Source: Caecitellus pseudoparvulus
Lineage: Eukaryota > Protista > Bigyra: Bicosoecida
DNA length: 64,000 bases
Direction of reading: 5' to 3'
NCBI GenBank assembly: GCA_965644315.1
Contig: CBFFRQ010000066.1
Span: forward strand, 596,032 to 660,031
Both the position numbers and the translations under genes were made by a program. Positions within the stretch are counted from its first letter, which is position 1, and every line of letters starts with the position of its first letter. This document shows, one piece after another, positions 31,362-34,154 of this stretch. The notes under the pieces were generated by a model that saw only the letters and a list, made by a program, of their open reading frames with translations, was not told the DNA's origin and did no database searches.

Positions 31362-33206
31362 ATGGCCGAAGGCAGCGACAGGCCGTCAGTGGTGGGGCGA
31401 TGGAAGGCAGCATGTGATGGTGAGCAGGCAGATGAGCTGCTGAGCATACTGGGGGAGTGTTGTGACGGCGCAGGCGGGGGGTTAGATGGGTTGTCAAGTG
31501 TCGAGACAACGGCTGGCTTCATGGTGGCTTGCAGAGCTGGTCACGTTGGGCTGCTGCGTGCGCTGCTGGCGTTGGAGGGGGAGCTTGCTGTGGATGTGCA
31601 CGCTGAAGGTGAGGATGGGCCTGAGGCTGGCTTCCTGGCTGCCTGTCAGGAAGGGCACCTCGATGTGGTGCGCGAGCTGCTGGCTCTGACGGGCGACCGT
31701 GAAGTGGACGTGCATGCTGGGGATCAGAGTGGGCCTGAAGCTGGCTTCCGGGCAGCCTGTGAGCATGGTCACTTTGGTGTGGTGCGGGAGCTGTTGGCGC
31801 TGAGGGGTCATCGCGAGGTTGATGTTAATGCTTGGAGTTGGCTCGGACCTGAGCATGGCTTCAGTGTTGCTTGTAAGAATGGACATGTTGATGTGGTGCG
31901 CGAGCTGTTGGCGCTGAGGGGGCATCGTGATCTAGTTTCTCGTGGGTGGCTCAAATACTTGAGGAAGTACTTGAGGGGGTCTTTCAAGCTTGATCTGGTT
32001 CTGGCTGTGCTGCTTGTGATGATTCTGGTATCGGGTTTCTGTATGTATGCAGATGCAAAGGAGCATGCAGGGCTTACTTGCGATTTTTTCGGTTACTTTC
32101 AGTGGTATTGTTCCTTTCGGCATGTGGGTGTGAGGGGTGAGACTCAGTGGCCGTCTTTTCACCTTGAAGCGGAAGGTTTGGGGATGCACTCCACGGGTTT
32201 ACATGCGATTGCTTGTTCCTTGTTGATATTCGCGGGGCTGTTCTTCGTGAGGCTCGGTGGCCCTGTTCTTGCCATGGGCGCACACACCCAAGTCAACGGC
32301 ACGGCTGAGCAAGGGTTTCAAGGGGCTTGTGAGAATGGCCATGTCAGGGTGGTGCGTGAGTTACTGGCTCTGACGGGTGATCGAGCTGTGGATGTGCATG
32401 GTGGGCCCGACGGCAGTCCTGAGGCTGGCTTTCGTGCTGCCTGTGCGAACGGGCATTTGGATGTGGTGCGGGAGCTTCTGGCACTGACGGGGGCTCGTGA
32501 GGTTGATGTCCATGCTGGGCCTGAGAGCGAGTCTGAGGCTGCCTTCAGACTCGCCTGCCAGCGCGGGCAAATTAATGTGGTGCGGGAGCTACTGGACCTC
32601 ACTGGTCATCGTGAGGTCGATGTGCACGCTGGATGTAAGGGTGAGCCCGAGCTTGCCTTCAGGCTTGCTTGTCGCTATGGGCACATTGATGTGGTGCGCG
32701 AGCTGCTGGCACTGACGGGTGATCGAGCTGTGGATGTGCATGCTGGGCCTGAGGGTGAACCTGAGTATGGTTTCCGACGCGCGTGTCAGGCCGGGCACAT
32801 TGATGTGGTGCGAGAGCTGCTGGCTTTGACAGGTGACCGTGAGGTGGACGTGCATGCTGGGGATGGAAGTGGGCCTGAGGCTGGGTTCCGATATGCTTGT
32901 CAACAAGGGCACATAGATGTGGTGCGCGAACTGCTGGCCCTTTCGGGCCATCGCAAGGTGGACGTGCATGCTGGACCTGAGGGGGAACCTGAGTCTGCCT
33001 TCCGGCTTGCCTGTGCGAATGGGCACGATGAAGTGGTGCGCGAGCTGCTGGCGTTGACGGGGGCTCGAACAATTCCACTCGAGGCTAGACGCGTCATGGG
33101 GATGAAGGAGGCCTCACAGCTCACCAAAGATGCTGTTTGGACTGGCACTAGCACTCGGCCAAGTCGGAGAGACATGCTCCTTTTGCGGGTTACTTGGCGC
33201 TCTTGA
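31362..33206 (+). CDS. 38-aa ankyrin-repeat protein (same family as 17991-20576) with an internal two-TM segment
   Basis: Repeat starts at 31509, 31623, 31737, 31851, then 32307, 32421, 32535, 32649, 32763, 32877, 32991. Hydrophobic stretches LVLAVLLVMILVSGFCMY and AIACSLLIFAGLFFV lie between 31930 and 32300. Confidence 0.85.
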   Translation: MAEGSDRPSVVGRWKAACDGEQADELLSILGECCDGAGGGLDGLSSVETTAGFMVACRAGHVGLLRALLALEGELAVDVHAEGEDGPEAGFLAACQEGHLDVVRELLALTGDREVDVHAGDQSGPEAGFRAACEHGHFGVVRELLALRGHREVDVNAWSWLGPEHGFSVACKNGHVDVVRELLALRGHRDLVSRGWLKYLRKYLRGSFKLDLVLAVLLVMILVSGFCMYADAKEHAGLTCDFFGYFQWYCSFRHVGVRGETQWPSFHLEAEGLGMHSTGLHAIACSLLIFAGLFFVRLGGPVLAMGAHTQVNGTAEQGFQGACENGHVRVVRELLALTGDRAVDVHGGPDGSPEAGFRAACANGHLDVVRELLALTGAREVDVHAGPESESEAAFRLACQRGQINVVRELLDLTGHREVDVHAGCKGEPELAFRLACRYGHIDVVRELLALTGDRAVDVHAGPEGEPEYGFRRACQAGHIDVVRELLALTGDREVDVHAGDGSGPEAGFRYACQQGHIDVVRELLALSGHRKVDVHAGPEGEPESAFRLACANGHDEVVRELLALTGARTIPLEARRVMGMKEASQLTKDAVWTGTSTRPSRRDMLLLRVTWRS

Positions 33207-33453
33207 AGATTCCAGCTGAGCTGGGGACTTCCTTGCAGCCGGCAGTGTGCTCAACTCCGGGCAGGAAGATTGATCTTCAGTCTGTTGGGATTGTATGGAT
33301 GATATTGCCAGTACACGGGGCCGTTGTGATCGAAGTGGTTCGCATTCACGGCTGGGCAGCTCCAGACACCCTCTGTGCGCTGTCTCCTTCCACATGCAAG
33401 GCTACCACAGTGAAATCAGCTAAAACAATACGCAAACAATGCATTCTTGCGGC

Positions 33454-34154
33454 TCAGATGCTGGCCAGGGCGCCCTTGCCCTTGCTCTTGTCCTGTGCCG
33501 CTGCCACTTTCTCATCGGCTACTGTCACTGCCCTCAACACCTCTCGCTTGTTGGCTTCTTGCAGCTCGCCGTGCAGCAGGACCTCGTCAAGCAAAGAGTA
33601 GGCCTTGTGGAATGAGAAGATGATGTCAAGCTCACACACCTGCGGGGGGAGAGATGGGTTGTGCTGCTGCAGTGCCAGAGCCAAGCCAGGGACACCACGC
33701 ACATTGCCAAAGTAGCGGTCCAGGACCTCCACGTAGTGGTGGATGATCTCCAGCGTTATGAGCTCATTGTCACTACTGTCCACACAGGCGACGAAGAAGA
33801 GGCTAGCATACCTGCGGGCCACACACCATGCATCGGTGCAGTGGCGTTTCGCGTCACATTCCGCACCTGCGAGGGCACCAGCGCGCTCACCGCTTGTAGA
33901 CGATCTTCTTCTCCCCCCACTCAAGGAAGTTGCTCATGCGTGGGGGCCTGTTCAGCACCAGCGTCGACACCTCGCGCATGATGCGCTCCTTCTCCTTGGT
34001 CTCGATGGTGTCGTACCACTTTGTCAGGCGCACCTTGCCCTGACGGCTCACGAGCAGGAGGAAGTGGATCTGCGACACAGTGGGGGAGGAAAGGGTTGAT
34101 GCCCAGTAAACACCCCTCTAAGCAGGTCATCTTTGCCCTTGTAACACGCACCAT
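33454..34154 (-). CDS. AP1S: AP-1 adaptor complex sigma subunit
   Basis: ATG-only first coding exon (34154-34152) and three introns. [59 protein letters not shown]. Confidence 0.93.

Follow-up and report, generated by a model that had tools for sequence, protein, structure and literature searches.

A degenerate patch encoding a predicted two-helix hairpin within an ankyrin-repeat array of Caecitellus pseudoparvulus: putative out-of-frame duplication with frame compensation

A gene of Caecitellus pseudoparvulus encoding a 38-aa ankyrin-repeat protein was found to contain a degenerate patch, predicted to form two transmembrane helices, in the middle of an otherwise intact repeat array. The best explanation, to which we assign a probability of roughly 55%, is that this is an old degenerate patch shaped by an out-of-frame duplication and its compensation and kept open by selection, so that the gene would now encode a membrane-anchored ankyrin protein. 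All positions given are those of the window, i.e., the whole 64,000-nt stretch of DNA that was analysed, and all features are on the forward strand.

The gene, its family and the degenerate patch

The ORF (31362–33206, 614 aa) carries the N-cap and the C-terminal tail box of its family, and its Pfam Ank_2 match (E 8.6e-35; 119.6 bits compared to a cut-off of 27.3) places it in Pfam Ank/Ank_2. No signal peptide was evident, and no effector, NACHT or death domain was detected with Pfam. The ORF is flanked by a mitochondrial carrier gene and an AP-complex sigma gene, one on each side, in the genome of a eukaryote with introns (30.6 Mb, 215 contigs) that occurs in marine samples. The family of 38-aa ankyrin arrays is large, with at least 246 matches among 149 scored candidates, and 415 of the anchor spacings in the fetched loci corresponded to 38 aa, besides about 16 true length variants of 34–42 aa. 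A second gene of the same family, with a long unrelated N-terminal part, is present at 17991–20576 of the window.

The degenerate patch (31929–32303, 375 nt) separates an N-terminal ankyrin block of about 3.7 units (31509–31928) from a C-terminal block of about 6.7 units (32304–33068), both delimited by anchors and conserved sites. The N-cap, the flanking units and the tail (W...RRxhhhhR box; 33138–33206) were all found to be intact. An earlier reading made from the sequence alone had described an apparent insertion of 456 nt, exactly 4 × 114, and this was confirmed: the anchors lie at 31848 and 32304, and the other spacings are all 114 except for the first, which is 111. Several further elements of that reading also held. 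The frame of the patch is open and the ORF runs into intact units at 32304; in each bin of the flanking repeats, 26–30 of the 30 conserved sites are kept, and the edges of the patch are sharp; T makes up 35% of the patch compared to 24% in the family; and two hydrophobic helices are predicted, at 31989–32051 and 32196–32255, with Kyte-Doolittle 19-mer maxima of 2.66 and 2.08, respectively. The statement that there was no net indel was correct for the net length; inside the patch, however, indels are present, and the frame was shifted and compensated at least once.

One public run (X1) covers 31889–32393 without differences, and two pieces from another run (X3) likewise showed none; an assembly error is thus excluded. 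Both runs covered the patch at about half the depth of its flanks, which means that the other haplotype either lacks the patch or differs from it by more than 15%. Further downstream, at 33130–33574, the two haplotypes in these runs both departed from the window, with 10 and 6 differences in 174 nt, and the assembly may be a haplotype mosaic there.

The two hydrophobic 19-mers and the positive-inside pattern of their flanks (7 K/R before helix 1; 3 K/R vs 6 D/E in the loop) are those expected of a two-pass membrane protein. The predicted hairpin agrees with the proposal that both ankyrin blocks lie on one side of a membrane, and the absence of a signal peptide, the seven basic residues before helix 1 and the acidic loop together lead to the prediction that the blocks and the tail box are cytosolic, with a loop of about 49 aa that would be outside or lumenal. 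Single-sequence AlphaFold models contained the helices, but their confidence in the patch was low and they were uninformative there. A hydrophobic hairpin inside the array was found in none of the other sampled family members. Some relatives (P0004, P0009, P0013, L024 and L028) have a hydrophobic segment located outside the array, and ordinary N- or C-terminal modules may also be a source of membrane anchoring in the family.

A second degenerate patch of about 123 nt, with sharp bounds, was detected in the array near the 3′ end of another family gene (L026; G000:C54:361573-365229). It is stop-free and not hydrophobic, and it is in register with the consensus (46% identity, the best of 114 offsets). 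In all, about 40 partly overlapping loci yielded two degenerate patches.

Repeat ancestry of the patch and the out-of-frame duplicate

The patch was best fitted by three repeat units with internal indels, as gapped profile alignment favoured three units over two or four (z 6.0–6.7). The sequence-only reading had proposed that three ankyrin units were converted in register into the hairpin; derivation from repeat units was borne out by this alignment (z about 6), but conversion in register was not. The patch gave no Pfam Ank match and scored −1.4 bits with the local profile HMM of the family; the local HMM is blind to the patch, and the ancestry therefore rests on the consensus alignments. Inverted, complemented or reversed repeat DNA was also tried as a source and scored at or below shuffles.

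The clearest remnant is a degenerate unit at 32028–32174, in the ancestral frame but shifted by +9 nt, which accounts for most of the loop predicted to be luminal or outside. Aligned to the consensus without gaps at +9 nt it was identical at 72 of 147 bases (49%, p<0.001), with a DNA segment score of 82 compared to 39.9 ± 6.8 for shuffles (shuffle maximum 75; n=1500; all 114 shifts tested) and a protein profile score of 26.9 compared to 11.0 ± 2.1 bits. It retains HAG, F, C, HV.V, E and H.E. This significant cryptic unit is the second one, which had not been cited before, and it lies 9 nt off the register proposed. Compared with the 114-nt consensus, this loop unit stood above the shuffled controls, whereas the third cryptic unit, which had been thought to be recognizably kept, was alone no better than shuffles (p about 0.5). 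Its A7-C8 and A27 matches are probably coincidental, since helix 2 appears to be largely an alternative-frame reading of a duplicated degenerate unit.

That duplicate is a diverged tandem copy of 32045–32166, located at 32176–32276 and read in the +1 frame, and it holds helix 2. The alignment of the two segments scored 62.5 compared to 33.4 ± 5.2, with p 0.005 after correction for the free choice of the split. Internal repeats within the patch are set 131, 125, and 110 nt apart, and each distance leaves a remainder of 2 on division by 3. At 23 positions the two copies have the same non-consensus base, the second copy agrees with the consensus against the first at only four positions, and none of 306 family units aligned to the second copy reached the score of the duplicate (maximum 51.5). 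Read in the ancestral frame, the duplicate is stop-free and resembles the loop (GFTCD vs GLTCD, EARWP vs ETQWP; p 0.011), whereas in its present frame no protein similarity to the loop was detected. Because of the shared non-consensus bases and the similarity confined to the shifted frame, helix 2 appears for the most part to be what the decayed unit, duplicated after its decay, encodes in the +1 frame. The segment is thus homologous to its neighbour yet read in another frame, and the frame is restored with no stop between; the putative restoring junction, a 5-nt loss, falls at 32277–32303 together with the last codons of the unit, which are back in register. In intact family units the +1 frame is on average more hydrophobic than the coding frame (mean hydropathy 0.48 vs −0.14).

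Changes of +9, +131, −6, −15, and −5 nt would together give the +114 nt relative to a two-unit ancestor. Given such a sum of indels, the exact multiple of 114 is a coincidence or reflects a length constraint, and is not proof of conversion in place.

For the region before the loop the signal is different. Helix 1 alone gave no significant alignment with the consensus (p 0.28), and it contains a possible 24-nt duplication. The 12-nt duplication reported earlier for the basic KYLR-KYLR stretch (31953–31976) is real, with 11 of 12 positions identical. In a shifted frame this stretch reads LEEVLEGVF, like the consensus PEGEPEAGF, and +8 was the best of 114 shifts against the consensus, with a suggestive p of 0.074; the 12-nt pair is probably the near-repeat of the repeat unit itself, read out of frame. 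Another allele showed four differences in the first KYLR copy and no gap.

Under the preferred reading, the ancestral gene would have had two additional ordinary ankyrin units at the site of the patch. Both lost the ankyrin constraint and diverged, as the alignments demonstrate for the loop unit and as may be supposed for the first. Once this unit had degenerated, some 131 nt of it would have been duplicated in tandem, an event for which the evidence is statistical and the breakpoints approximate. This would have shifted the frame, and in-frame losses of 6 and 15 nt plus the 5-nt loss downstream, in an order that we infer, would have restored it. As the +1 frame of the G/T-rich repeat is intrinsically more hydrophobic, later substitutions could have turned it into two strong helices. 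Purifying selection, together with exchange with hundreds of paralogues, would have held the flanking units close to the family pattern. The patch would be old, its open frame under selection, and segregating at a locus shared by highly dissimilar ankyrin alleles; the predicted two-pass product may be a variable binding protein tethered to a membrane.

Alleles, selection and alternative explanations

Two gap-free allele lineages of the patch, about 13% apart, were found. A metagenome (X5) contained two alleles with 2 and 46 differences in approximately 355 nt (46/354) and no gaps, and another run (X9) showed 81 differences in 631 nt with no gaps in the patch, all counted from partial lists of differences; in the flanks of the latter, 63 differences were accompanied by 9 gaps. 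The 3′ flank itself is diverse, at 3–7% from the window, so that a divergence of 13% within the patch does not clearly point to hypermutation there. At a larger scale, contig L047, which represents another haplotype of the species, was 97.6% identical to the window over 7 kb up to 30940, past which (L047:6990-8477) it carries a different ankyrin gene with intact units and 69% identity. The 3′ flank of that gene was 93% identical to a tandem cluster on contig C183, where the closest 5′ relatives of the window gene, with intact arrays, are also located. These comparisons show that the locus holds very different ankyrin alleles. C183 may be an alternative haplotype, and the locus behaves as a slot for divergent ankyrin alleles. 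An allele with intact units was thus found, although as a different gene (L047), whereas none of the alleles found had the loop unit in unduplicated form.

Neutral decay in a dispensable or dying gene, with the patch as a tolerated or non-expressed relic and functionless helices, is rather unlikely, although hundreds of family copies provide redundancy, other haplotypes do without this version of the gene, and the frameshifted intermediates imply a relaxed phase. The loop compared to the family showed pS 0.62 and pN 0.54, and units compared to each other pS 0.58 and pN 0.22 (49 codons, with pS near saturation). These values are compatible with neutrality within error and with selection alike, and positive selection on the patch is possible. 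However, in simulations of neutral change of equal size the frame stayed free of stops in 1.8% and two helices were present in 2.6%, each unlikely under neutrality, and the many gap-free substitutions of the X9 allele as well as the intact N-cap, flanking units and tail also argue against decay.

That three units were converted in situ without leaving the register, whether through a localised burst of point mutation or through strong positive selection, is improbable. The register was tested against a consensus of approximately 300 family units with codon-shuffle controls. In strict register the three cryptic units showed 37, 33, and 34% identity (p 0.07, 0.26, and 0.04), and the whole patch 35% compared to 29% for shuffled sequence (p 0.004–0.008), first of 38 in-frame offsets. 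This result, the excess of exactly 342 nt and the L026 patch, which is truly in register over its 123 nt, favour such a conversion. The strict register was, however, third or fourth of the 38 offsets when profile scoring was used instead, and the signal was far stronger at +9 nt and in the shifted frame, by which a strict 38-aa register reached through point changes is largely refuted. Nor did the mutation spectrum fit the proposed localised hypermutation. Base retention in 31974–32174 was 9/15 for A, 6/20 for C, 26/54 for G, and 12/21 for T; the commonest change was G>T (13), with only 3 C>T, and no A-, C-, dinucleotide- or RIP-type signature was present in the patch when DGR, AID/APOBEC and RIP types were considered. 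The T excess is concentrated at the first and second codon positions (28 vs 11% and 36 vs 28% in patch and family, compared to 33 vs 32% at the third), and T occupies 74% of second codon positions in helix 1. An excess bound to codon position is fitted better by amino-acid-level change and a frame shift than by a T-biased mutator.

That part of the patch is an intron or an alternatively spliced piece, leaving a protein with one helix or none, also has a low probability. The patch is T-rich, and a strong, canonical-like GTAAG donor lies at 31873–31880 in the last intact unit before it, with frame-preserving acceptors at 31935, 32052, and 32070; frame-preserving GT..YAG pairs occur, for instance 31873–32052 and 32028–32102, and such pairs could remove helix 1. 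However, YAG acceptors are missing from 32147 to 32347, and clean removal of the patch by a canonical intron is therefore not possible; the neighbouring introns are 63–82 nt long with CGCAG-type acceptors, and the T excess depends on codon position.

Acquisition of the patch through gene conversion or insertion from a divergent sequence at another site, for instance from a lost or unassembled degenerate ankyrin sequence, would fit the sharp edges but is very unlikely, as the patch is single-copy in its own genome in both DNA and protein searches and no credible relative was found in protein collections (word searches, HMMER over 1.84 billion representatives, and Atlas), in agreement with the earlier proposal of an origin from repeat units. 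Candidates that came up in these searches were rejected: two HMMER matches (P0001 and P0002) were unrelated repetitive ORFs with scores summed from weak stretches, Atlas matches scored below 0.8 and were considered noise, Pfam matches to cytochrome b561 and DUF4405 were below cut-off, and four 20-mer matches from a metagenome pattern scan were chance hits in unrelated AT-rich DNA.

Relation to known systems and significance

Transmembrane segments are usually acquired by domain shuffling or from non-coding DNA. The flanking units of the present gene match the usual ankyrin repeat, long hairpin loop included, as in Pfam Ank_2 (PF12796), but here, unlike in ordinary Ank_2 proteins, a hydrophobic hairpin interrupts the array. 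Pairs of compensatory frameshifting mutations have been described in vertebrates and insects, where they are rare (6 stringent cases of 624 candidates; Biba et al., 2022, PMC8935012). As in those cases, a stretch between two frame-changing indels is here read in another frame and gains substitutions, giving novel sequence in an old gene; the differences lie in the cause of the first shift, a duplication of 131 nt from a decayed repeat unit, and in the outcome, a predicted transmembrane helix. In an in silico comparison, alternative frames of repeats were more hydrophobic and might make membrane proteins of soluble ones, an effect most evident for short repeats and homorepeats (Osmanli et al., 2025, PMC12871928), whereas the present case is natural, concerns a solenoid repeat of 38 aa, and regains its frame further downstream. 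By analogy, the patch would work like a compensated frameshift within a tandem repeat, along the route to membrane segments predicted in silico. According to Vakirlis et al. (2020, PMC7005711), T-rich non-genic DNA can give rise to de novo transmembrane domains without a protein homologue; T-rich sequence likewise yields the predicted helices here, but its source is former ankyrin coding sequence within a gene. In a narrow literature search no paper describing this route for an ankyrin array was found.

The non-self recognition hnwd genes of Podospora, in which WD40 units are carried on NLR proteins and RIP is a possible mutator (PMC2873952), resemble the present family in the large number of repeat genes, the conserved units with variable surface positions and the very divergent alleles, which here are the 69% identity of the L047 gene and the 13% between patch alleles at one locus. 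Unlike in hnwd, no NACHT or death domain is present.

The general weight of the finding is moderate, as it concerns one locus and a predicted product. The ancestral state is nevertheless unusually well known, with hundreds of intact copies of the source unit in the genome and old alleles of the patch in public runs. This makes the gene a tractable natural case of the change from a soluble repeat protein to a membrane protein, and of compensated frameshifts as a route to new topology. More tentatively, the gene may be expressed unspliced with the hairpin as a selected functional anchor made wholly from ankyrin DNA, and such remodelling of patches, perhaps recurring in the family as at L026, might be one route to new cellular locations for a variable ankyrin recognition family.
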